From assembly GCA_051530055.1 (NCBI GenBank), contig CM121342.1:3072797-3136796 (forward strand): 64,000 nucleotides of DNA, in the 5' to 3' direction. The notes beneath the pieces are model-generated. The model saw nothing but the letters and a program-made list of their open reading frames with translations, did not search any database and was not told the origin of the DNA. Both the position numbers and the translations under genes were made by a program. Shown in pieces: positions 3,116 to 61,195 of the stretch. Source of the DNA: Neoechinorhynchus agilis. Lineage: Eukaryota; Animalia; Acanthocephala. Position 1 is the stretch's first letter. Every line of letters begins with the position of its first letter.

Positions 3116-3189
3116 AGGTGATTCCGAATAAACATAAAAGTTACAGGTAATATCTTTATAACTTATGTTTAACTAAATATCCCAAGATA

Positions 3190-5205
3190 CTTTTATTTTC
3201 TAATCATTGTAGAGCTTACAGTCTTAATAATAAATTGTTTAGCTGTCTTAGTGCCAGATAAAAAGGGCCAGTGTAATTTTTTTCTAATTTCTAATAATTG
3301 TAGAGCTTACAGTCTTGCTGATAAATTATTTAACTATCTTTGTGCAAAAGAAAAAGGTTCAGTATATTTTTTTTCTAATTTCTAATCCTTGTAGAGCTTA
3401 CGGTCTTAATGATAAATTGTTTAACTATCTAAGTGCAAAAGAAAAAGGTTCAGCATAATTTTTTTCTAATTTCTAATCCTTGTAGAGCTTACGGTCTTAA
3501 TGATAAATTGTTTAACTAACTTAATGCAAAAGAAAAAGATTCAGTATATTTTTTTCTGATTTCTAATCCTTGTAGAGCTTACAGTCTTAATGATAAATTG
3601 TTTAACTATCTTTGTGCAAAAGAAAAAGATTCAGTATATTTTTTTCTGATTTCTAATCCTTGTAGAGCTTACAGTCTTAATGATAAATTGTTTAACTAGC
3701 TTAATGCAACAGAAAAAGGTTCAGTATAATTTTTTTCTAATTTCTAATCCTTGTAGAGCTTACAGTCTTAATGATAAATTGTTTAACTATCTTTGTGCAA
3801 AAGAAAAAGGTTCAGTATAATTTTTTTCTAATTTCTAATCCTTGTAGAGCATACAGTCTTGCTGATAAATTGTTTAACTATCTTTGTGCAAAAGAAAAAG
3901 GTTCAATATAATTTTTTTCTAATTTCTAATCCTTGTAGAGCTTACAGTCTTAATGATAAATTGTTTAACTATCTTTGTGCAAAAGAAAAAGGTTCAATAT
4001 ATTTTTTTCTAATTTCTAATCCTTGTAGAGCTTACAGTCTTAATGATAAATTGTTTAACTATCTTAGTGCAAAAGAAAAAGGTTCAGTATAATTTTTTTC
4101 TAATTTCTAATCCTTGTAGAGCTTACAGTCTTAATGATAAATTGTTTAACTATCTTTGTGCAAAAGAAAAAGGTTCAGTATAATTTTTTTCTAATTTCTA
4201 ATCCTTGTAGAGCTTACAGTCTTAATGATAAATTGTTTAACTATCTTTGTGCAAAAGAAAAAGGTTCAGTATAATTTTTTCTAATTTCTAATCCTTGTAG
4301 AGCTTACAGTCTTAATGATAAATTGTTTAACTATCTTTGTGCAAAAGAAAAAGGTTCAATATAATTTTTTTCTAATTTCTAATCCTTGTAGAGCTTACAG
4401 TCTTAATGATAAATTGTTTAACTAGCTTAATGCAAAAGAAAAAGGTTCAGTATAATTTTTTTCTAATTTCTAATCCTTGTAGAGCTTACAGTCTTAATGA
4501 TAAATTGTTTAACTATCTTTGTGCAAAAGAAAAAGGTTCAATATAATTTTTTTCTAATTTCTAATCCTTGTAGAGCTTACAGTCTTAATGATAAATTGTT
4601 TAACTATCTTTGTGCAAAAGAAAAAGGTTCAGTATAATTTTTTTCTAATTTCTAATCCTTGTAGAGCTTACAGTCTTAATGATAAATTGTTTAACTATCT
4701 TTGTGCAAAAGAAAAAGGTTCAGTATAATTTTTTTCTAATTTCTAATCCTTGTAGAGCTTACAGTCTTAATGATAAATTGTTTAACTATCTTTGTAAAAG
4801 AAAAAGGTTCAATATAATTTTTTTCTAATTTCTAATCCTTGTAGAGCTTACAGTCTTAATGATAAATTGTTTAACTAGCTTAATGCAACAGAAAAAGGTT
4901 CAGTATAATTTTTTTCTAATTTCTAATCCTTGTAGAGCTTACAGTCTTAATGATAAATTGTTTAACTATCTGTGTAAAAGAAAAAGGTTCAGTATAATTT
5001 TTTTCTAATTTCTAATCCTTGTAGAGCATACAGTCTTGCTGATAAATTGTTTAACTATCTTTGTGCAAAAGAAAAAGGTTCAGTATAATTTTTTTCTAAT
5101 TTCTAATCCTTGTAGAGCATACAGTCTTGCTGATAAATTGTTTAACTATCTTTGTGCAAAAGAAAAAGGTTCAGTATAATTTTTTTCTAATTTCTAATCC
5201 TTGTA
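3190..5205. repeat. Tandem satellite, about 90-91 bp unit, about 22 copies
   Basis: Unit ...TTTCTAATTTCTAATCCTTGTAGAGCTTACAGTCTTAATGATAAATTGTTTAACTATCTTTGTGCAAAAGAAAAAGGTTCAGTATAA...; TTGTAGAGC recurs at 3751, 3842 and 3933 (91-bp spacing). Confidence 0.97.
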
Positions 5206-6800
5206 AGCGTCCATATGATCTTGGACATACATAAGAATAGCTATTAACGTATTGGGAAAAGGCGCTTTTATAAGAACTAAAACTATTTAGTAAAACTTAC
5301 AATTGCTAATATGTAGCGAAATCCGTAGGATAAGACTAAAATTGACTTCGGTATTATTAATTCATTTTGGTCCCGCATCTCCAAATATAACTTATTATTT
5401 ATTAGAGATTGTTGTTTTCGTCGTTTCTTGTTGTGCAATTTGAAGTCACCAAGGTATGCGAGAATTCGGAATATCCAACAATAATGTTGATCGGACATCT
5501 TTTTATCGAAAATAATAACTTATATAGGGACATGCAATTTCTTGAATTTGTGTAATAATCTGCGAATGCTCCACGCCTTCTTTTAAGAAGCAAAATAATT
5601 TTTAATCCTTTTGAAGTATTCAAAGTCTTGGCATTTGCTTGCACCTAAAATAATATTAAATCTGCATTGCAAAAGTCATGATCCACCGCATTGATTGGCG
5701 CAAAACTTTAGACTCAATGCCAATGGTTTTAATTTAGAATTTTATTCTGAACACAGTAATTCTAGGTACCCATAGTTAAGTCATGGCAATTTCTCTATTT
5801 TTTAATTCCACTAACCAATGATATTTCCTAATAAAATAGTTCGGATTTTCGCACAAAATCTCTTTAGAAAAAAGTTTAAATTTCTGTCAATTAGAGAGTG
5901 ACCATGCACCGCTTTCGTCGGGTTGGAAGGGCAATAGTCTAATATGAATTAGTAAACAGTTAAACGCAAAAAATGTATTATTAGGGCGAAAAAGGCATTT
6001 CTAGTAAAGAAATTGACCCGAATCCCCAAAGGATAAATCCATTTCAAAAAACATTACTTATTTTCATCAATGAATAATATTTTTGTTCCGGAATTTGCAT
6101 CAAATGCTGACAAGCGTTAAAGGTTGGTTTCATTTATGTGTCTTGACTTTTTATGATTGTCCTAAAATAAGCTCTAAGATTGGAAAATGTCACATAAAAG
6201 CAATTTCCTCAATCTACACAGGAGTAGACCTTGTCAAAACATTAAAAGGTGCACTATATCACTGCCATACGAAAACGCAACCTGCTAAGACTCAATATTG
6301 ACTATCTCAAAACGAGTTTGATCCAAACTACCCCTCTGAAACCATTATAGATTAAGTCGAGAGAGCACTTTTTCGCAATAGTGCTTTCATTATGAAGATT
6401 TTTTCGCTTGTTCTCAGCGATTGCCACTACCGACACCCTTTATCTACAAACAAAGTGTCCCAAATTTTCATAAAACCAAAGCAAGAGAAGTAACGATAGA
6501 TGACTGTCGGAACATTCGTCAACTTAATGATTGATTAGTCACGAAAAATGGATTTCCAGGCCATACTGAAATTATGTGAGCGATCCTATGGAAGATTTTT
6601 ATGATTTTGTGAATTTCTCTTTATATATTTCTACGTTTCACCCACAGCGTTCAAATTTAAAAACATTAATCTATATGTATATGTAAGTATCTCTCTATGA
6701 TAATTTGGAAGATCTTTTTGTTTTTTCAGAACAAAAAACAAATAGTCCAGCCATTTAGCACCGATTAAGTTTTTTGTTCATATGGATTAACTATATCGGA

Positions 6801-8823
6801 TCAGCGGTTGTGACTAGGATGCTTCTTGAGATGTCTGTCCAGGTTTGTATGCTGTGCAAACTGTTTTTCACATCCGTGGCATTTATAAGGACGCTGATTT
6901 AGATGGATACTTCGGACATGGCGTTGGAGATTAGATGATATTGAGAATCGACGGCTACAGTGCTCACATTTGTATGGTTGTTCTCCGGTGTGTGTTCGTA
7001 AATGCCGTGTCAGATTATACCGTTGATTTTTCGAAAAGAAACCATTTCATGAAGAATCAACGGGTAGCTGAACGTGGAAACTGTTTGCTACAATGGGGGC
7101 ACTCGTGGATAGTTGATTGAGTTGGTATACCAGCATTACTTCGTCCTTGTAAGGCATTCGAATGGTTACTAGAAGGACTGGACGGATCCGGAACGTTGCC
7201 ATTTGAGATAGCTGGTTTCTTAAGCAGACTACAACTCATGGTATTTTTCCGTCGCTTACGGTTTTCGACTTCTGGTGGAACGGGCGGAATTGCGGCAGCA
7301 GTTTGAATATTGGCTATTTCTGAAGATGATCCAGATGAAGGATGACGATGTTGACTAAGATCAAGTGGCTGATCGTCAGTTCGCTTTGTATCTGTTGACT
7401 GTAGGTTGCTGCTATTGGTGGTGGTGGTGGGGATGTTTGCGTTTGCCATCGGTGTCGAATGGAACAGGTTGACTGATTGGAACGGATTCTGGACTCCAGC
7501 TTGTGCAACGAGATTAAGAACGATTTGACACATTCGATGGAATTCTCTGTAGTCATTGTGTTGCAGCATTAAAGGATTCCCAGCGAATCCGTTTGTGATA
7601 AAGGAGATTATGTTTTGATGGAACTGTGCCGCTTGGAGGTTCAGATGATGGGTTGGTGGCATGTAAGCGGTGGCCACTGGCGCCTGTTGTTGGCTTACAA
7701 CTACTGGATTTGGTGGGACTATGTGAATAAAAAATAGGTGAGAAGTGTTTTTCCAACGGCAAGAATAACAGGACGAACCTTGTTGATTTGTATGCTGAGC
7801 GATTGAAGTGCTATGTTTATTTTTGTGTTGTTGTTGTTCGACTAGATGAGTTCGTTTGTGTCGACAAAGGTTTGAAGGTTGTGTATAGGACTTATCGCAG
7901 ATCTAAAGGTTTTTTAGGGTTACAAAACGGCATCTCTGTTTCTCTTTAAGGCATTCTATGGTTGAACCGAGAGAGAGCAGGAATTGGATCATTTATAAAT
8001 GTCGTTGTGTGCACGCGTTGATCATTACCGCCACACTAAGAGAAACTCTTCATCTTTACTGGGAGTTGGAGTTACATGGCGGCACAGTAGTTGGACACCG
8101 CGCGGTAGCATCGGCGTGACAAAAAAGTGTGTGATGAACATCCCTTAATGGGTTCAACGAGCAGAACATCATGATCGTTTTCACGGCAAGAATGAGTGTT
8201 TGGCCTTGATGATGGGGAAAGCATAAGATGACTCGCATGCACATACACACAAAGACGTCCTATTATTCAGTTCAAAATGCTCCATTTAGATCTGGGGTGC
8301 TGCTCTAATGAATCATACAGGCGCCGACGATCCGTACAATTCCTAAAACCACCACCCCCGTACCGCTTCAAGGATAATGGAGTGAGCCAAAAGTAGTGGA
8401 AGGAGTCATTGCTCAAAAATAAAAAGGAAAAAAAACTGATTCGGTGTTGAGGAGACCCAATGAGTCACAAGCAAACACGAAGATGAGAAGAGTCACTCAC
8501 CTGACATGTATATGGCCGATTACTCTTGTGAACGTTCATGTGCTGCTTTAAACCCGATTGGGACGCAAAGCTCTTCGAACATATCTTACAATTGAACTTA
8601 GAATCCTTGACATACTCCTCGTTCAATGGAGCTACTGTTGAACTGTTCTCTTGTCTATTGTTATCGTCTTCATTAACCGTGGAACTCGTGACGCCCTGAA
8701 CACCATTAACTCCGGATTCGCCACTCGAAGCTGACTTTGTAGACTCGTCGTTGTTGTTGTTGTTGTTCATCCCAGTAGTTGTTATTTGATGTGAAGAGGA
8801 TGCTATGATCATTTCATCAACTG
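6801..8823 (-). CDS. MECOM: Evi1/MECOM/PRDM16 (hamlet/egl-43)-like C2H2 zinc-finger transcription factor; 5' exon(s) not resolved
   Basis: Exons encode [33 protein letters not shown]|[19 protein letters not shown] and a C-terminal cluster [14 protein letters not shown]^[66 protein letters not shown], matching the two Evi1-family finger clusters. GT-AG introns at about 7909-8500 and about 7724-7779; one non-canonical insertion at 7016-7066. Confidence 0.88.
7016..7066 (-). other. TA-bounded, inverted-repeat-ended exon insertion #1 (49 nt removed)
   Basis: Minus strand: TCA GC[TA] C CCGTTGATTCTTC...GAAAAATCAACGG TA [TA]AT CTG. Removal leaving one TA gives TCA GCT AAT CTG (S-A-N-L). There is no AG in the insert. 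Confidence 0.9.
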
Positions 8824-15394: not shown

Positions 15395-16545
15395 GAGTCG
15401 CATCCTTAATTTGAAATCAGGTTTATTGCCCTCGAACGTTTCGAACCTATTTATAAGGATTCGATGATAATACGTTCGAAACGCCGACCATTGCGAACTA
15501 GTGTTGTAGCGCCACTAAAATCGATAGTGTGCCCTGTGTTTTTTGCATGGGCCACCACTGCGGAACTAATATCCGTGTTGCGAACAAATCCGTCGGTTGA
15601 AATTGTTGGTCTGCCCCACATAGACCTGTTTGCAACCGGAGCACGGAATTTTGGAGACCGCACCAGATGACTGTTGGCCATTCTTGGGACATATCAATCC
15701 GTGTAGAGTGCGTCCCACTCTCTTGGCCTCACATCCTGATTTTATGATGCGCTCCATAGCAAGAATGATCATCAGGGAATGGCAGTTCAACGTGGATTTC
15801 TTCCTTTTTAGACTTTGTCTCCCCATTGAAGGTTCGACAAGATGGAGAGGATAACCATATCGACCTGATATGTACTTTAGGTAATCAATCTCCTCGTTAC
15901 ACAACTTGGCGTTGCTACAATGTGTAAGAGCACGATGGATGAGTGACATAATCCTCAAAATTTTGTATTTGCGAGGTTGGGCTGATGTCCATGGCACAAG
16001 GCCCACAGGTATACTTCTCTTTCGGTACACCCTGGTCGTGTAGTTTCCACTGGTTAACCGGGCTATCCTTACATCCAGGAAGGGAAACGTTGAAGGCGGT
16101 CCATATTCGTCTCCGACGGGTCGATCAACAAGAACGTGTCATCCACATATCTGAACCAGATCTTCTGTATCGACGACAAATGTTCGCTCTCCCAGTGCCG
16201 CATATATAGCTCAGCAAGCACAGGGGCTAACGGGCTGCCCATCGCCACTCCATCTTTTTGATCATAGTCGATACCGTTGAACTGGAAGTTGCAGAATCTG
16301 GTACAAAAATCCTCTCCATCTTGTCGAACCGACCCACTGGTATACCTCTCTTTCGGTACACGCTGGTCGTGTAGTTTCCACTGGCTAATCGGTATATCCA
16401 TACATCCAGGAACGGAAACTTACCATGGTCCTCCTCCTCGATCGTCCACTGAATATTGTCGTCCCTTCAGTTCATGTTTAAGGCGATTCATATTAGTCTC
16501 TGAAGGTTGGATCAACAGGAACGTCTGATATGTACTTTAGGTACG
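15395..16545 (-). mobile_element. Decayed, rearranged Penelope-like retroelement (RT + GIY-YIG)
   Basis: Fragments YDQKDGVAMGSPLAPVLAELYM and WFRYVDDTF (RT), plus GAVSKIPCSGCKQVYVGQTN...HAKNTGHTIDFSGA (GIY-YIG). Frameshifts, and an internal duplication at about 16005-16080 vs 16335-16410. Confidence 0.88.
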
Positions 16546-17329: not shown

Positions 17330-18070
17330 TCATTTTGACTTGTAATGAAATACCGGACGAGTATATTCACCACAAGTCAAAATTTACCATCCCAATATGA
17401 ATTTTCTGTCCAGGAATTATTCGTGGTAAAAAATAATGGTCATTTCGGTGTATTTTAAAAAAAAACACTTTTAAATTTATTAAATCTGAGATATTTTACA
17501 GACACAATCTTGTTAACGACTTTAATAAATTCCTTCAATTTTTTACTGCCATAAACAAACATTTAATATTTGTTAATGTGTTTCTTGGGGTTTGAAAAAA
17601 GTGACCGCATAAAAATAATAACATATTGAACCACTCGAATTCAATCGATTAAAAAAATGTTTGGGATAAATGCTTAAAGAACTATTTAAAATTTGTTTGA
17701 AGCTTACGAAACAATTTAAATAAATTGTCAATACCAACAACAATCCGGGGTTAAAACATCGCCAAACTCGAATTTAATATTATTTTACATATAAAATAAT
17801 TTCAGCTTTGTACGCCAACTCTGGTCGGAATGTTGGCGTGATTTTTTTAAATTTTAAACTTTGTATTGTCTAATTCTTCATTTTTACATTTTTTGGTTGA
17901 ACTGTATTTTTCCGCGTTTTTAGACTCCATTTTGCTACTTTAAGGCGAAACAAAATTTAATATTTCCTCTACTTCGTTCGAACCTCATCAGAATTGCTTA
18001 TAAGTTTTAGAAATTGTTCCATCGACATGAAGGAAATATTAAATCATTTCTATTTCGCCTGACCTAAAGC
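17330..18070. mobile_element. MITE-like element remnants, same family as those nested at 45551-45880
   Basis: Shares CACCACAAGTCAAAATTTA.CATCCC and AAATATTAAATCATTT...TATTTCGCC with 45705-45880. Confidence 0.5.
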
Positions 18071-18539: not shown

Positions 18540-19010
18540 AACTCCTTCACCTTTCGAAGCTCGTCGAGTTTATTATGACCGTTTATTAATAACACGTCTT
18601 TAATAAACTTTTTAAAGGGGGTGAAGACTTCTAAACAATAAGTTTAATTTTTTATTAAAGGCGTTCTGCGAACCTCGCAGGGTTCATCATCAGTCTGTTG
18701 CTTTCTTGCGAAATAAACTGATGATGAACCCGACGAGGGTCGCAGAACGTCTTTAATAAACTTTTTAAAGGGGTTGCAGAGTTCTAAAAAATAAGTCTAA
18801 TTGTTTGGTAAAGACGTTCTGCGAACCTCCTCAAGGGTTCATCATCAATTCCATTCGCAAGTTTGTTGCTTTCTTGTGAAATAAACTGATGATGAACCCC
18901 TTGGGTGAGGTTCGCAGAACGTCTTTAATAAATGCTTTAAAGGGGTTGCAGAGTTCTAAACAATAAGTCTAATTTTTTATTAAAGACGTTCTGGGAACCC
19001 AAAACTTAAA
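18540..19010. repeat. Palindromic-unit tandem repeat family (copy 1)
   Basis: Units TTATTAAAGACGTTCTGCGAACCTC...GGGTTCATCATCAG...CTGATGATGAACCC...GAGGTTCGCAGAACGTCTTTAATAA separated by an AAAGGGGTTGCAGAGTTCTAAA linker. Confidence 0.9.
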
Positions 19011-21830: not shown

Positions 21831-23082
21831 TTATTCAGATAAAAGATCTTTTAAGATTACACGCGACTTTTTAGACATTCCCGCTTTTTGCATATTTAAA
21901 AAGAATCCATCTTCAGTAGAATGTTCAATTGAATGGTAAGGATCTCCATAAGATGTGGTCAGATACTTTCGCCAAATCTTGATGGCCAATGCTCGCTGAA
22001 GGTTGAGGAACACAAATGGACTTAGTGGAACAATTCGCACACTTCCTTGGCATTCATCTTCGCCGGATTTAGATACGATCTTTAAAAGGATCAATCCACT
22101 ATTCGTCAAACGCATTGTTGAAAACAAAACGTTTGATCGGATTCGTCCGATCACTTTTTCCACTTTAATGTATTTTATTAAATGTGTTACCAAATCCGCG
22201 AGTATTAGAAATTGTGAGTGCTCTTCAGCCTTTTCCGAAAGCATAAGACAATATTTGCCAATAAGACATTTTCGATGGCAGTGTAGAAAAAGCGTTCTCT
22301 GGAATCGAATAAAGGAAACCGAGTCCTGAACTTAGCGAGACAACGAAGAACCCGGAGAACACTTTTGGTACGTTTTTGAATAAACCATCGAGTTTTTCTC
22401 GCTTACAGCCTTTTTCTACACTGTATTCGTGCCAATTGAGTTCAATTTTTGACAAATCGATACTCGCAATCTTGTCCGTGAAAGCACTTTCAGCGTTTTT
22501 AAGAACTCCGCCAAAGACATAAGCCAATCCTTCGAACACTACGACGCACGGAGCCACTCTGTGGAATTTATCCACTTGGTCTTCTCCATGAATTTCATGG
22601 TAACAAAACGATCGCTTGTAAGTATCGACTTCGACGACGACTTTGGAACATTCTGTTGGAAAACAATATCCGCCAATGACAAATACCGAATTTTCATGAA
22701 CGACCACATCAGGAAGGTAAGGTAAGTAATTTTGCTTACATCTAATGCAGCTGATTAAACCTCTTCCATCTTGCAAGCTGATTCTATATGATTCTCTGCC
22801 TTCGGATACATATTTGAAACTAAATTTGTTTCCAATGAAACTTTTGTCGCTAGACTTTACACTTATTTCCCGATCAGTCTTCGGAATCAAAATACTTGGC
22901 ATAAAGGGTTCAAATTCGTAAGTTGTGCCGCAATAACGTTGCGTATCCCAAGAGGAAGGGTCTTTGAGTTTATCGAGAAATTTATACGGAAAAGAAGACG
23001 AAAACATTTCTTCCATTTTGGTTTTTCCTTCTTTAATTTCGGATATTGATCCCTCGATATATAAAAATTCGTCAATTCTCAT
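21831..23082 (-). CDS. Kelch/beta-propeller-like protein, two exons
   Basis: VFVIGGY and AYVFGG kelch-type GG motifs. The frame change between ORFs 22225-23082 and 21831-22244 is resolved by a canonical GT-AG intron of about 43 nt (about 22299-22341). Confidence 0.6.
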
Positions 23083-24242: not shown

Positions 24243-24438
24243 ACTACGGAATGTACAAACTTCGCAACAAATTGGCCTGGATTAGCTTTCCGATTTAAGT
24301 GTTCTTATAGGTGGCTCAGACGGTATTTTTTTATAGGTGTGTTTAAAATTACTTTTTCAACCATAGTTCCATGGGGTTCTTGGCCACATATCTAACTCGC
24401 TTCGATTGTTTTCTCCGCCGCTGCTCATGATTTTGCGT

Positions 24439-25133
24439 CCGGATTCAGTGCATTGCGAACATTGACTCAAAAGGGTAGGTCAGTTTTCTCGATGTAGATG
24501 ATCCTTTGATAGTCATCGGGCAAACATAGTTCGCTCGTTATCTCTTAGACCACGATTCTTCGAGTGTAAATCGAATCTTATCGGTTATTTGTGTCCACTG
24601 ATTTCCCTGGGCACGATACTGGACTTGTTTCCGGCGGTTCATGATGTCCAGTTCTCGTCAGTGTTCGTCTAAGTGTAGGCTCGCTTCTCCGTGGACAATC
24701 CGGACATCCATTCTGGATCGTAGCAGCAACTTTAAAAAACGGCACTAGTGAACTTTTCACTGATATATTTTTATCTTCAGAATCGGTTATCCCCCCAATC
24801 GATTCCTTGAACGATTATTGTTCCGCTTCTCCTTTCTTGAGTAACACAAATTCTGGATCCTCCTGATATCGTGCAAACTCAATTCAATAGGTTTCCCGCT
24901 TTGTAAAGGAATCATCAATTTAAATGCCACGTTTTCGCTGTGCTTCTTGTTTATTGACCTTTGGCGTCTTCGCTGTACGAGTGCCGCAGTTGGGCTGCTA
25001 AATGTCGAGTTGTGATATCGTGGTCTAAGAGATAACGAGCGAACTATGTTTGCCCGATGACTATCGAGGGATCATCTACATCGAGAAAACTGACCTACCC
25101 TTTTGAGTCAATGTTCGCAATGCACTGAATCCG
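24439..25133. repeat. Fold-back structure with about 115-bp inverted arms
   Basis: 24439-24555 (CCGGATTCAGTGCATTGCGAAC...TCTTAGACCACGA) is the near-perfect reverse complement of 25018-25133. Confidence 0.9.
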
Positions 25134-25710
25134 GGTGTAAAATTGTGACAAACCGCGCAACGACAGAGAAAACTCGATATCTGGTGCGCGCTCACATTGC
25201 ATGTTTAATATGCTGCCCAAATATTTGAATGTGTTCATCTTTTCGATCTGAGTTCCTTGCATATCGAGGTTACCCGGTCCCATGTATTTCGTTTTGCACC
25301 TGCTCGCTCTCAATCCTTTGCTCTCTAATCGTTGTCGCCAAATCTCCAGCAAATTCTTGAGCGTGTCCACATCCCTTGCTGTGAGCACCAAATCGTCCTG
25401 CGTTAATTTCTCTTTCCGCATTTCCTAGGACGTCCATCACGATCGTGAACAAGAATGGGCTCAGGGCCGAACCCTGTTGCAGACTAACGGAGACTAGGAA
25501 ATAGTCGATGGTTCCGCCATGGCATCGAACGCAGGTGTAGCATTCTCGATACATCGCTCGAATCGCGGCACCATCCTACTGTTTTGTCTCCTCTTGAACG
25601 ACACGACGCAAAATCATGAACGAATCAATGACCAAAAGCACAACTCAGCGTTCTCGAAGCGAGTTAGATATGTGGCCAAGAACCCCATGGAACTATCGTC
25701 GAAGCACTTC
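25095..25710 (-). mobile_element. RTE-clade non-LTR retrotransposon RT fragment (frameshifted)
   Basis: LQQGSALSPFLFTIVMDVL and DDLVLTARD...WRQRLESKGLRASRCKTKYMG...FKYLGS occur in two frames. Confidence 0.85.
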
Positions 25711-49799: not shown

Positions 49800-50410
49800 T
49801 AAAATGTCGATATGTGAGGAGGAGGAGGAGGTACCACGGGCTATATGGTTAGAAAGTTTAGAAATATTCACTCCTTTAAGGCATTTATTAAAGACGTTCA
49901 GTTTATTTCGCACGAAAGCAACAAGCTTGCGAAACGAATTGAGGATGAACCCTGCGAGGTTCGCAGAACGTCTTTAACAAACAATTAGACTTATTCTTTA
50001 GAACTCTGCAACCCCTTTAAAAAGTTTATTCAGTTTATTTCGCAAGAAAGCAACAAACTGGCAGTGAACCCGTGACGAGGTTCACATAACGTCTTTAATA
50101 AAAAATTAGAAATCTTCTTTAGAACTCTGCAACCCCTTTAAAAAGTTTATTAAAGACGTTCTGCGACCCTCGTCGGGTTCATCATCAGTTTATTTCACAA
50201 GAAAGCAACAAACTTGCGAAACGAACTGATGAACCCGTGACGAGATTCGCAGAACGTCTTTGACAAACAATTAGACTTATTCTTTAGAACTTTGTACCTC
50301 TTTAAAGCATTTATTAAAGACGTTCTGAGAACCTCGTCGGGTTCATAATCTGTTCTAAAATACAAGTGGTTCCATTTAACCACTTGTATTTTAGAACTGA
50401 TGATGAAATC
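49800..50410. repeat. Palindromic-unit tandem repeat family (copy 3)
   Basis: Same units. Begins with GTCGATATGTGAGGAGGAGG and ends in a perfect 20-bp stem GTTCTAAAATACAAGTGGTT/AACCACTTGTATTTTAGAAC. Confidence 0.9.
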
Positions 50411-52639
50411 GACATTTCCTATTGGTAGTTTTGCCAATATATTTCCGATATTTTGTCGGATAATTCCTCCAAATTTGTAGTTGAAGACCTAAACAATAAG
50501 TATATTAACGTTGGCGCAATGCGTCCAAAATTTAATTCAAAAAGATATAGCGAGCATGTGACAAAGGGATATACTTTTTCGTTTAATTGATTCCGCTTCT
50601 ACAAAAGCATCTTTGTATTTTCCCTTTGTGGGTATTTTTCACGAAGACCGGATGTTGCATTATTCGGCTCAAAGACAAGAATCGGGAATCCGCTTTGAGA
50701 GAACAACAATAATAATCGTATATTTGATATTCGTAAATACCCATTGAAAGTATCGCTTTCTTCAGCAAATGAACATTTTAAATGGTAAATGACATTTTTA
50801 CTGGAATTATGACTTATAATTAAGTAGCAAAAGCCTTAGACTGCTTAAATTTACCAGAATTCAAACAAAATCAAACGTGGGTGGTTTAAGAGTACTGATA
50901 AAAGAGCAGACAGTTTGACATCTTCATTCGACATTCTACATGGAGCTTAAATTTCCATACAATGCGTGGAATCTTTGCGTTAATCAGACTAAGAGCTTCC
51001 ATTTAAAATTCAATACTGTCATTTAATTTAGTTAGATCATAATTAAAACATACTTGGACCATTGTGCAATCGTTCTTTTTGCAATTCTCAAGGGTAATCG
51101 AGTTTCCTCCACACTCCATCGCCACTATTTAGATGCGTAAAATGTGTGAAATTTGGATATCTTGAAGCAGTTATCTTCACTAATGTGATTATTTAGTCGA
51201 TCTTGAAACTTATAGTGAAGTATAAATATTATCATTGGTCTTAAAAGTCCCAGTAAGGCGCTGTTGTGTCAATATTTAACTCATCCATATCGCCAGTTAT
51301 TACTTTGGCCACCAGAACAGAAACTATTGGTTAGTAAATGAGTTTTCTAATATCAAATGAATAATTTACATCGCCACGATGTTAGAATGCTGAATTTCTA
51401 GTGCCACTTTAAGTTCACATTTGTAAAAAAATCGAGACAACTAAATCTTACTACTACTACTTTCGAAACCAATAAAATGAGCTAAGATTTTGAAAAACAC
51501 AATATCGAAAAAATGATTGAGAAAATTTTTTAATTCATTGATCATTGTCAGTTATTCGAATTTCATCTTTAGACTGACCTATTATCTTATAAAATCTGAG
51601 AGTAATTATAAATTGAAAAAAAAACAAATGTCAAAAATTAAACAACAATATCATAACTTTTGAGATCATAGATGTTTTTCCAAAAGAAAATCGATAATCA
51701 CAGAGTTCAAATCCGTGCTTATTCGATGATGGTTTTCCACAGATTTGTATTTAAACAAAATAATGATATAAAAATGTTTTGTCCTTGCTAAAAGAATAAA
51801 ATATTAAAGATTTTAAAAAATCACTTAATTTTTTCATTGACGCGTTTGTCAAGAAGTTTGTCCGCGAGGAAAACTAGATCGATTTCGTCTCTAAAGTGCA
51901 TCTAAACCTCCCCAGCGATCCAATTTTCTGCACTGTAATCAACTTTCCAAAAAGGGCGCAGATCCTATGTAGTAGCTCGAGCATTTTAGTATAATTGTAT
52001 GGCACATATCATGCAGCAAATTTGGTTAAATGAGAAACGGCTAATTGTATTCAAAAGTGTTTATCGTGACATTTCACAACGGCCTATTTTTTGGCTGATG
52101 CCAATTAATATATAATTCCCAGCAATAGTTTACTTTCCACCAAGAGACTCATGTCTATTAATAACTTCCATCGCATGATGCAAAGCAAAGAGTGCGAACT
52201 TATTTTAAAACAACGAAAATCTTTGTATATAAAGGAATTTCTTTAAAAGTTAGAGTAAAAGGAAGTGCAAGGATTTCGAGAGTTACAACGAAGATCGACA
52301 ACGAGTAGTTTCTCATGAGACTTGAAACAGAATCAAAGACTGATTTCAAGTTAGTATGCAAAATCCTTTTAGAGGGAGAAATTAAAAATGATTATTAAAA
52401 ACCAGACTTGAGACAACAATTTCGCATGAATGAGAAGCAGCGCTTAGAGAATGATTTTAATAAAAAGCAAAAAATTATATAAAGATTTTGTAGGATACCA
52501 AAAATGTTATGCAATAGATAAAATTATGGCCTACTTCCAAATAAAGACAAAGCTGTCGCGAATACGAATGTGCAAATTGTTTGATAAAAAAAATTTTAAA
52601 TGTCCTTCCTCTTACAGGCAAGAGCTTCTTAGTCGCAGT

Positions 52640-56239: not shown

Positions 56240-57065
56240 TCTCTCTAGTGCATAGAGTTATAATTTAGAACTCTTCATCCCTTTAAAGAGTTTATTAAAG
56301 ACGTTCTGTGAACATCATCGAGATGGGTTCATTATCAGTTTATTTCACAGGGATGCAACAAACTGATAATGAACCCCTTCGGGGAGGTTCGCAGAACGTC
56401 TTTAATAAAAAAATTAGAAATATTCTTTAGAACTCTGCAACCCCCATAGAGAGTTTATTAAAGACGTCCCGCGAACCTCGTCCGGGGGGTCATCATCAGT
56501 TTATTTCGCAAGAAAGCAACAAACTTGCGAAACGAACTGATAATGAACCCTGCGAGGTTCACAGAACGTCTTTAATAAAAAATTAGACTTATTTTTTAGA
56601 ACTCTGCAACCCCTTTAAAAAGTTTATTAAAGACGTTCTGCGACCCTCGTCGGGTTCATCATCAGTTTATTTCGCAAGAAAGCAACAAACTTGCGAATCG
56701 AACTGATGATGAACCCTGCGAGGTTCACAGAACGTCTTTAATAAAAAATTAGACTTATTCTTTAGAAGTCTGCAACCCCTTTAAAAAGTTTATTAAAGAC
56801 GTTCTGCGAACCTCGTCCGTGGGATTCATCATCAGTTTATTTCACAAGAAAGCAACAAACTTGCGAATCGAACTGATGATGAACCCTGTGAGGTTCGCAG
56901 AACGTCTTTACCAAACAATTAGACTTATTGTTTAGAACTCTTCATCCCCTTTGAAAAGTTTATTAAAGACGTTCTGCGAACCTCACCGAAGGGGTTCATC
57001 ATCATCAGTTCTAAAATACAAGTGGCTTAATGGTTATTCTGCTCTCACACGCGCTTATGGTTCAT
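56240..57065. repeat. Palindromic-unit tandem repeat family (copy 4, about 4.5 units of about 166-170 bp)
   Basis: TTTAATAAA recurs at 56401, 56571 and 56737; ends with TAAAATACAAGTG...GCTCTCACACGCGCTTATGGTTCATT as in copy 2. Confidence 0.92.
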
Positions 57066-57418
57066 TATGTGAAGATTTCTAAACGATAATTCTCAAATAC
57101 TTATATTCCGGTATCTCCCCATTTGGGTCCTCATAAACACTTGAATTCTGATTTGTTCAGTGAATGCGGTTTGTTGTTTTTGGAGTGGATTACGGGTTCG
57201 GTCGGGTTCTTTCCTCGGGTTACATTTCTAGAGCTTATTTTTTTGGCGTTCACATATTCGTCTAATCTGCATGATACGCTAACCCGTTTCCTTCCTTTAA
57301 GCTCCGTTAACTGAATCCGGAAGCACGCCTTATTGTCCGACGCCGTAATTCGATGATTTCAAGCGTTTCAGACACTCGTAGGAAAGATGGCGTTAATCTA
57401 TTGACGGCGTCGACAAAA

Positions 57419-60910: not shown

Positions 60911-61195
60911 AAGATGAGAGAGAATGACGAAGCAAGAAAAGTACTTCATTGAAGCACCATCCATCAGTCGTCTATGGAACTCAAAAATGGAAACTGTAAT
61001 CACAAAGATTTATATAACAAGAAGGGCAGGACTCTCCAAACAGTACTTCGACCGAAGAATGAGAATGGTATTTCTGGTTGTGTCTACAAGATCCCAAGTT
61101 CCAACTGCAATATATCAAATGTGGGACAAACGAACAATCTAAAAAGAAGGATTGCCGAGCACCGAAAAGCAACCTTAAAGAAGACTCATCATTAA
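60911..61195 (+). mobile_element. Penelope-like GIY-YIG fragment
   Basis: RPKNENGISGCVYKIPSSNCNISNVGQTNNLKRRIAEH. Confidence 0.75.

Follow-up and report, generated by a model that had tools for sequence, protein, structure and literature searches.

A 49-nt hairpin in an Evi1-type gene of the acanthocephalan Neoechinorhynchus agilis: shortest member of a candidate class of TA-bounded, helix-closed introns

In animal mRNAs, paired inverted repeats trigger the excision of DNA transposons by SOS splicing, which involves AKAP17A, CAAP1 and the ligase RTCB (Zhao et al., Nature 2025; PMC12779559), and the authors of that work hold that exonic transposons are purged over time (PMC12779559). Two other systems depart from ordinary splicing in different ways: the removal of nonconventional introns in euglenids apparently involves no lariats (PMC11282704, PMC11170887), and the introner introns of Fritillaria borealis and Amoebophrya belong to multi-copy families that are handled by an altered spliceosome (PMC7789003). 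A fourth, the internal eliminated sequences (IESs) of Paramecium, is removed from DNA rather than RNA, by a domesticated transposase in the ciliate macronucleus. Here we analyze a 64-kb stretch of DNA (the window) from Neoechinorhynchus agilis (Acanthocephala; GCA_051530055.1, chromosome CM121342.1, ~3.07-3.13 Mb), in which a 49-nt hairpin insert splits a zinc finger of an Evi1/MECOM-like gene. On balance, we favor the reading that this element is the shortest of a class of TA-bounded, helix-closed, non-spliceosomal introns that are removed from RNA.

The gene that carries the insert is, judging by homology, an Evi1/MECOM-type factor. It encodes two N-terminal C2H2 fingers, then a PLDLS motif, through which Evi1 binds CtBP, and then a C-terminal block of three fingers; in a homology search, MECOM/hamlet proteins from arthropods, annelids and rotifers matched this block at 68-75% identity. 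The gene is interrupted by two canonical GT-AG introns (8500-7903 and 7778-7719, minus strand), and the insert falls within one finger, between its Cys pair and its His pair. The gene and the parts of the insert are as follows; the arms were located by an inverted-repeat search and the other parts read from the sequence.

6801..8812, minus strand: Evi1/MECOM-like zinc-finger gene; exons 8812-8501, 7902-7779, 7718-7065 and 7015-6804; stop codon 6803-6801
7066-7065, minus strand: 5' TA of the insert
7064, minus strand: 5' spacer, C
7063-7051, minus strand: 5' arm, CCGTTGATTCTTC, which holds an in-frame TGA
7050-7033, minus strand: loop, ATGAAATGGTTTCTTTTC, 18 nt
7032-7020, minus strand: 3' arm, GAAAAATCAACGG
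7019-7018, minus strand: 3' spacer, TA
7017-7016, minus strand: 3' TA

A sequence-only reading of the window had proposed a 49-nt insertion after FPRSA on the minus strand, and when we re-read the coordinates and flanks this proved correct to the base. The insert consists of a removable unit of 49 nt plus one retained TA, or 51 nt from TA to TA (7016..7066, minus strand), and the public record GCA_051530055.1 carries the identical 51 nt. The same reading had described its layout as TA, C, arm, loop, arm, TA and TA with 12/13-bp pairing; we likewise find a helix of 13 positions, 12 of them paired, with one C.A mismatch and spacers of 1 and 2 nt. Of the 49 nt, 26 lie in this helix, and the element is essentially two arms and a loop. 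Upstream, the coding sequence runs CAG TTT CCA CGT TCA GCT (QFPRSA), and downstream it resumes with AAT CTG ACA CGG CAT. Read-through past GCT (Ala) gives ACC CGT TGA, so the in-frame TGA that had been claimed is indeed present, at 7059-7057, in agreement with the end of the open reading frame (ORF). Excising 49 nt yields TCAGCTAATCTGACA, the product that had been predicted and the one that the TA rule described below gives as well, and restores the zinc-finger frame after FPRSA. Three removal registers are equivalent at this site (7066-7018, 7065-7017 and 7064-7016).

Folding of the element had been proposed as a check. A 63-nt RNA containing the hairpin has a predicted energy of -16.4 kcal/mol, compared with a mean of -8.4 kcal/mol for shuffled sequences (z = -3.4), and none of 200 shuffles was as stable. 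In the predicted structure, a 4-bp helix of exon sequence is separated from the 13-bp helix by a 4x6 internal loop; none of the known RNA families matched the hairpin. A helix of at least 12 pairs in the equivalent position occurs in only ~0.4% of random TA pairs in the window.

Canonical splicing does not account for the insert. As had been claimed, there is no AG between the insertion and the GGAG downstream: none occurs anywhere in the insert, and the first one beyond it is at 6984-6983, in CCGGAG. The sole in-frame GT-AG solution joins the donor ACCC/GTTGAT to the acceptor CCGGAG/AA, which would delete 11 residues plus (E), the helix with both His ligands, just as the sequence-only reading had anticipated. 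The residues that would be lost are identical in rotifer orthologues and so must be coding, as their conservation at the level of codons shows. The comparison with orthologues that had been suggested also bears out the join. The joined 20-residue string is identical to the orthologue of Adineta vaga and differs at two residues from that of Adineta ricciae, and the A. ricciae locus (CAJNOJ010000108.1; L004 2332-2480) has no interruption at FPRA/ANLTRH, where its DNA reads GCG AAT, without a TA. Thus, the Evi1 insert is lineage-specific. The A. ricciae gene has a canonical GT intron further downstream, after SISSNLQ, that N. agilis lacks; intron positions in this gene have turned over between the bdelloid and N. 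agilis lineages.

The sequence-only reading had regarded the 49-nt insert as the short form of a class. Consistent with this, we found four longer members in the window, each flanked by TA and closed by a terminal helix, in two other conserved genes: Rpn1/PSMD2 (25940-31088, plus strand) and KCC/SLC12 (42181-47264, plus strand). Exon ends were placed by aligning ORFs to solved human structures (PSMD2; KCC1-4) and to 8 orthologues. Slashes mark the joins.

27002..28002, plus strand: Rpn1/PSMD2 junction 1, ATC[TA]gatgaGGATCGATGAGTGGGG...TTTCACTCATTGATCCaa[TA]CGTT; removal of 999 nt gives KQTDMI/YVMNGS
29209..30420, plus strand: Rpn1/PSMD2 junction 2, CTT[TA]aGTCAGCAAAACG...CGTTTCGCTGACaa[TA]TGGAC; removal of 1210 nt gives SNPKLNF/MDTLLKF (human 706/707)
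44012..44569, plus strand: KCC/SLC12 junction A, GCAT[TA]aGATATCGATTTTCT...AGAAAATCGATATCa[TA]CAAGAC; 556 nt removed after ACALQ/ (human ACALQ/TLLRTPNWRP)
45381..46700, plus strand: KCC/SLC12 junction B, ATTT[TA]tGGCAATCA...TGATTGCCc[TA]ACGGCT; removal of 1318 nt gives HDAGLMIL/TAHLIKKHKVW (human HDGGMLML/LPFLLKQHKVW)

All five inserts, of which the Evi1 member is the shortest, share one anatomy. Each runs from TA to TA and is closed by a helix of 10-16 pairs (G.U counted) that begins 1-5 nt inside the 5' TA and stops 1-2 nt short of the 3' TA. When the element is taken out along with one of its two TAs, the reading frame is restored in 5/5. The joined sequences (GATATGATCTACGTTATG and AAACTTTATGGACAC in Rpn1, GCGCATTACAAGACATT and ATGATTTTAACGGCTCAC in KCC) are gapless against orthologues at all four junctions and give single ORFs of 979 codons for Rpn1 and ~1070 codons for KCC. 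We compared TA with every other dinucleotide in a test anchored on homology, with stems and frames fixed beforehand. TA, which makes up 6.9% of dinucleotides, gave an in-frame join at 5/5 inserts, AA did so at 1/5, and the remaining 14 dinucleotides at 0/5.

The helices have 12 pairs in Evi1, 16 and 11 at Rpn1 junctions 1 and 2, and 14 and 10 at KCC junctions A and B. As a background, we took random TA pairs 40-1500 nt apart in the window, allowing one mismatch and the same spacer tolerance as for the sites; helices of at least 10, 11, 12, 14 and 16 pairs were found in ~1.6%, 0.8%, 0.4%, 0.11% and 0.06% of them, respectively. The joint probability of chance is negligible, even with several alternative TA pairs per junction. 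Eight GT-AG introns from the Evi1, L7Ae-family and sulfotransferase genes served as a control, six of 37-60 nt and two of 598 and 1245 nt; the smaller ones bear out the claim that the 49-nt element is about as long as ordinary small introns here. Seven of the eight have 4-8 terminal pairs, and the eighth, the 1245-nt sulfotransferase intron, has 10, equal to the weakest class member but with a weaker end-to-end duplex. The ends of the long class members (n=4) form duplexes of -15.7 to -27.1 kcal/mol, versus -5.8 and -11.4 kcal/mol for the long canonical introns (n=2). In minimum free energy (MFE) folds of the ends, both TAs lie at the foot of the closing helix in 5/5, and at KCC junction B the two TAs, being self-complementary, pair together over a 1x1 mismatch.

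It is the shape of these ends that recurs, not their sequence. The helix sequences differ among all five members, and each of the 80-nt termini is unique within the window. The long members contain nested repeats, listed here with the other copies of one family.

27215-27891: tandem array, ~150-bp period, copies 91-98% identical, in the interior of the Rpn1 junction-1 insert
18594-18999, 29640-30254, 49856-50413 and 56253-57066: palindromic repeat family of ~115 nt with ends TTTATTAAAGACGTTCTGCGAACCTCG/CGAGGTTCGCAGAACGTCTTTAATAAA, in clustered head-to-head units, one cluster lying within the Rpn1 junction-2 insert
45551-45723: element resembling a miniature inverted-repeat transposable element (MITE), inside the KCC junction-B insert; its terminal inverted repeats, AATTTTGACTTGTGGTGAAGATAATCACCCGGTTA, are perfect over 35 nt

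As the termini are complementary despite these nested repeats, only the ends seem to matter. Conserved pairing of the ends with a free interior would suit a signal that is recognized once a single strand has folded, and not a transposase binding site. A relative of the junction-B MITE is found at 17352-17407, just downstream of the L7Ae-family gene. Immediately upstream of Rpn1 lies another element (24356-25703), bounded by inverted repeats of 50 nt that are 96% complementary; further in are 141-nt inverted repeats, and its ORFs, which are frameshifted, resemble reverse transcriptase by eye.

A de novo scan for TA-helix-TA units that join long ORFs gave noisy output in this AT-rich window, and we used the homology-anchored test instead. 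Short TA-flanked hairpins numbered 43 in the window versus 2-13 in shuffles, with AT-, AA- and TT-flanked hairpins equally common; the excess is due mostly to the ~115-nt palindromic family and carries no TA-specific signal. A candidate sixth member, an 85-nt TA-flanked hairpin on the minus strand (22370..22284), was left uncounted, as it overlaps a good annotated 46-nt GT-AG intron (GTACCA...CTAAGTTCAG). This hairpin has a 16-position helix with spacers of 2 and 2 nt, and its removal, too, would fuse the two long ORFs of a lineage-specific gene without a frameshift. The overlap may be coincidental, or one site may be processed in two ways; the hairpin and GT-AG products differ by 13 codons.

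We next compared the five inserts with known intron and element types. At the inserts checked in Evi1, Rpn1 junction 2 and KCC junction A, the conserved residues are not preserved by any in-frame GT-AG solution. The conserved MDTLLKF at Rpn1 junction 2 is preceded, 18 nt upstream, by an in-frame TGA, with no AG between them. At KCC junction A, the acceptor TAG/AAA requires a phase-0 donor, and none exists. None of the five inserts has a polypyrimidine tract; their 3' ends (AAATCAACGGTA, GATCCAA, GCTGACAA, GATATCA and GATTGCCC) all lie inside the helix. A U12-type AT-AC intron (5' /ATATCCTT) is ruled out, as 0/5 start with ATATCC or end with AC in any of the three registers. In the predicted structure, a tRNA-type bulge-helix-bulge intron is ruled out by the lack of two 3-nt bulges separated by a 4-bp helix, and an IRE1 (XBP1/HAC1) intron by the lack of twin 7-nt CNGNNGN loops.

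Several described systems share features with the inserts. TA...TA flanks together with inverted ends are the hallmark of TA-inserting DNA transposons of the Tc1/mariner MITE type; like Stowaway-like MITEs, the five inserts show a TA target-site duplication (5/5) and terminal inverted repeats. The 80-nt termini have no second copy within the 64 kb. The closest animal system is SOS splicing. Like its substrates, the N. agilis inserts are exonic elements with terminal inverted repeats that, by fold and duplex energy, can pair in mRNA, and SOS splicing likewise acts at non-GU-AG junctions at or near the repeat ends, tolerates a dispensable interior and takes the TA-inserting Tc1 and Tc3 as substrates. 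It differs in using many junctions and leaving indels, where the N. agilis junction must be exact; in its repeats of 54 nt, compared with helices of 10-16 bp; and in its targets, which are recent insertions and a few sites in untranslated regions or pseudogenes, whereas the N. agilis inserts are permanent in essential genes.

Euglenid nonconventional introns (PMC11282704; PMC11170887) are alike in lacking GT-AG ends and a polypyrimidine tract, in the pairing of their ends, in borders left ambiguous by direct repeats and in pyrimidine/purine borders, which T/A fits. They also range from tens to thousands of nucleotides, coexist with conventional introns and have a suspected MITE origin. In contrast, they belong to a protist lineage, their pairing is short and they have a CCAGG-type consensus at +3 to +7 (PMC11170887); the N. 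agilis helices are longer, TA is strict, and the 5' ends after TA (CCCGTT, GATGAG, AGTCAG, AGATAT and TGGCAA) lack that consensus. With the introner introns of Fritillaria borealis and Amoebophrya (PMC7789003), the inserts share species-specific positions, but those introns have shared ends (AG-AC and AG-AT in Fritillaria), whereas the N. agilis helices are all different and the ordinary introns of the window fully conventional. Paramecium IESs likewise have TA at both ends with one TA retained, lie within coding sequence and can be as small as a few tens of nucleotides. They differ in having a weak end consensus and no long complementary ends. The N. agilis ends do not follow the consensus TAYAGYNR, with A at position 4 in 2/10 ends and G at position 5 in 4/10.

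Introns that derive from transposons, have non-canonical borders and are flanked by inverted repeats and target-site duplications are already known. What appears new is the combination of strict TA, idiosyncratic helices without an end consensus, residence in essential bilaterian genes and coexistence with normal introns. Our literature search found no such introns described in Acanthocephala or Rotifera, and no extension of SOS splicing to natural coding introns.

How might such inserts be tolerated? The exons beside them show no decay. Rpn1 is an essential proteasome subunit. With ~2300 codons of flanking exon undamaged and a subunit as necessary as Rpn1 among the products, the inserts would have to be gone before translation. 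We infer removal itself, the RNA level at which it would take place and the enzymes that would act from the following considerations. Removal from the transcript is favored because shape rather than sequence is conserved, because animals excise exonic elements with paired inverted repeats independently of the spliceosome (SOS splicing, PMC12779559), and because euglenids have helix-closed non-GT-AG introns (PMC11282704, PMC11170887). It is favored, too, by what is absent elsewhere in animals, as developed below for excision from DNA.

Our proposed model is as follows. Small DNA elements with terminal inverted repeats, similar to Tc1/mariner-type MITEs, would have inserted at TA, duplicating it, and each insert would be transcribed together with its gene. 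In the pre-mRNA, the ends would pair into a helix of 10-16 bp whatever the length of the interior (49 nt to 1.3 kb), so that the two UA junctions come to lie beside each other at 1-5 nt from the foot of the helix. A structure-recognizing, non-spliceosomal machinery might then act, with an endonuclease that cuts the two strands in one register, at the UAs or directly beside them, and ligation of the exons would leave one UA and restore exactly the frame that existed before insertion. More speculatively, a U/A cut on both sides would amount to a blunt cut through a 2-bp UA/UA palindrome and would leave U>p and HO-A ends, as in RTCB chemistry. The process would be constitutive and precise, as it would need to be because the inserts sit in essential genes. 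A broader claim, which we hold tentatively, is that acanthocephalans possess constitutive, precise, spliceosome-independent, TA-bounded hairpin introns, either a domesticated, high-fidelity form of SOS splicing or an independent analogue of euglenid splicing, in a bilaterian.

Several observations weigh against removal from RNA by such a machinery. Mismatches in the helices (four G.U, all in one helix, versus two A.C) do not clearly favor the RNA strand, although positions are few, and TA with inverted repeats would suit a DNA-level excision system equally well. The sequence leaves the exact cut register ambiguous. Searches with the joined Evi1 and Rpn1 proteins against a 5.8-billion-protein database returned no spliced product from N. 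agilis and no acanthocephalan relative, and exact look-ups of the same two proteins found no match, only the broken annotation models. The class is described from one 64-kb window of one genome. Finally, SOS splicing is neither precise nor uniform, and few natural targets for it are found in exons (PMC12779559), which makes a precise, constitutive version an extrapolation.

Among other explanations, the one that survives best, although we consider it unlikely, is removal by a spliceosome with relaxed site recognition, as in the tunicate Fritillaria borealis, where the inverted-repeat ends of introner MITEs serve as U2 non-GT-AG sites. Fritillaria shows that animal introns can be flanked by inverted repeats and target-site duplications, 2/5 of our inserts begin with AG right after the 5' TA, recalling AG-AC and AG-AT, and 49 nt falls within the local size range of small introns. 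However, all eight GT-AG introns that we checked are conventional (GTAAGT, GTGAGT...T-rich AG), and the spliceosome therefore looks ordinary. The hairpin class, by contrast, has no end consensus beyond TA and lacks both a polypyrimidine tract and an AG, and in the Evi1 insert the helix would bury both ends and any branch site.

Alternatively, the inserts could be germline-restricted, IES-like sequences that are cut at TA in the soma, so that the assembly would represent germline DNA. Retention of one TA from TA...TA is the Paramecium IES rule, and the size range, from tens of nucleotides to kilobases, and the location inside coding exons also fit. We nevertheless regard programmed DNA excision as improbable. 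Precise intragenic DNA elimination is known from ciliates alone and is not known in animals, which in turn favors removal from the transcript. The ten insert ends do not fit TAYAGYNR, and the assembly, which was made from worm DNA, contains the inserts. Moreover, a domesticated transposase has no need of unique, well-maintained complementary ends, whereas a folded single strand does.

For Evi1 alone, a third possibility is that nothing is removed and that the hairpin is a recent, disruptive and possibly polymorphic insertion that truncates the protein at FPRSATR. The annotated product does stop there: the GenBank model ACOME3_005283 (P0001, 365 aa) terminates with ...FPRSATR and a stop codon within the hairpin, and an element so small could be young; its sequence cannot be dated. 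This explanation has little to recommend it, however, when set beside the sequence that follows. Downstream of the insert, 71 codons stay open to the stop and encode 2.5 zinc fingers with every ligand kept, and they contain no Met, which rules out an independent cistron or split gene and hence a separate product. A truncated protein would finish at half a finger. In addition, the exons around the four sister inserts in Rpn1 and KCC are intact over about 2000 codons, and two of these inserts carry nested repeats and are therefore old. A split-gene reading of KCC is likewise ruled out, as its exon 2 has no start codon near its beginning. Finally, it is scarcely credible that the insert is an assembly or polishing artefact, or that it is bypassed in translation like the gap in phage T4 gene 60: hairpins can trouble sequencing, and a 49-nt gap with an early stop and a stem-loop superficially resembles the 50-nt gap of gene 60, but one specific rule is common to five sites, record and window agree, and programmed bypass (T4 gene 60, mitochondrial byps) is ruled out by the lack of a GCU-type landing codon before AAU and by sister elements of 556-1318 nt against a gap limit of ~55 nt.

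At all five sites, the GenBank model is broken, being truncated, split or mis-spliced. Two proteins, of 354 and 421 aa, stand in for Rpn1, and no annotation covers its last exon (30421-31085). The stop codon of the 354-aa model is a TAG that includes the junction-1 5' TA; the 421-aa model starts 5 nt after the 3' TA of junction 1 and reads beyond junction 2. In a 90% clustering, the representative of the 421-aa fragment (P0245) is an unrelated 53-aa Logan protein (SRR24994265; L005) whose contig shows no similarity to the window; it looks like a database clustering artefact rather than a relative. KCC is represented by a mis-spliced 907-aa model, identified by exact look-up as KAL7670353.1, and by a second, separate model of 191 aa for the SLC12 C terminus, whose start ATG lies within the 3' arm of junction B. 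The intron called in KAL7670353.1, GT44045-AG44657, loses 30 residues that are strongly conserved with human KCCs and adds RYRFSLFPFW.

The rest of the window holds features of other kinds. Between the sulfotransferase and Evi1 genes, an AT-rich stretch contains a ~91-bp tandem repeat (about 3170-5300), recognizable from the ORF fragments FLISN.CRAYSL.DKLFNYL.AKEKGS, with hits 91 nt apart. Decayed retroelement ORFs at 15569-16419 (minus strand) and 60953-61192 (plus strand) carry a motif like that of GIY-YIG endonucleases (YVGQTNNFNRRI, NVGQTNNLKRRIAEH), which hints at Penelope-like elements; the first of these ORFs had no match at E <= 1e-5 in the 5.8-billion-protein database. Of the Rfam families, only tRNA exceeds the threshold anywhere in the window, with a gene at 34770-34841 (minus strand; RF00005, 63.9 bits). 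An intact single-exon ORF of CRIP/LIM type with an acidic tail (33576-34133, plus strand; MEIERCGRCDKPVYFAEERIAGGKKWHNTCFKCGLC...) is not among the genes called here in the public record.

Broken gene models may matter beyond these three genes. The N. agilis genome paper reports 47.1% complete metazoan BUSCOs in the genome and does not mention introns, and for the eukaryota set the transcriptome scores 71.0% versus 58.4% for the genome. The higher transcriptome score is compatible with genes that are interrupted in DNA and whole in RNA. Claims of massive gene loss in acanthocephalans, which are based partly on gene models and BUSCO, merit re-examination with an intron model that includes this class. 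If our interpretation is correct, the inserts would be natural, precise substrates for inverted-repeat splicing, a recently discovered process that is poorly understood, not least in its endonuclease and cut-site rules, and the 49-nt Evi1 element, with its 13-bp helix and two UA junctions, would make an ideal minimal reporter. N. agilis would then be a bilaterian with a second, structure-defined type of intron beside the ordinary ones, present even in the gene for a proteasome subunit, and a TA-inserting transposon could become an intron without ever gaining GT-AG.

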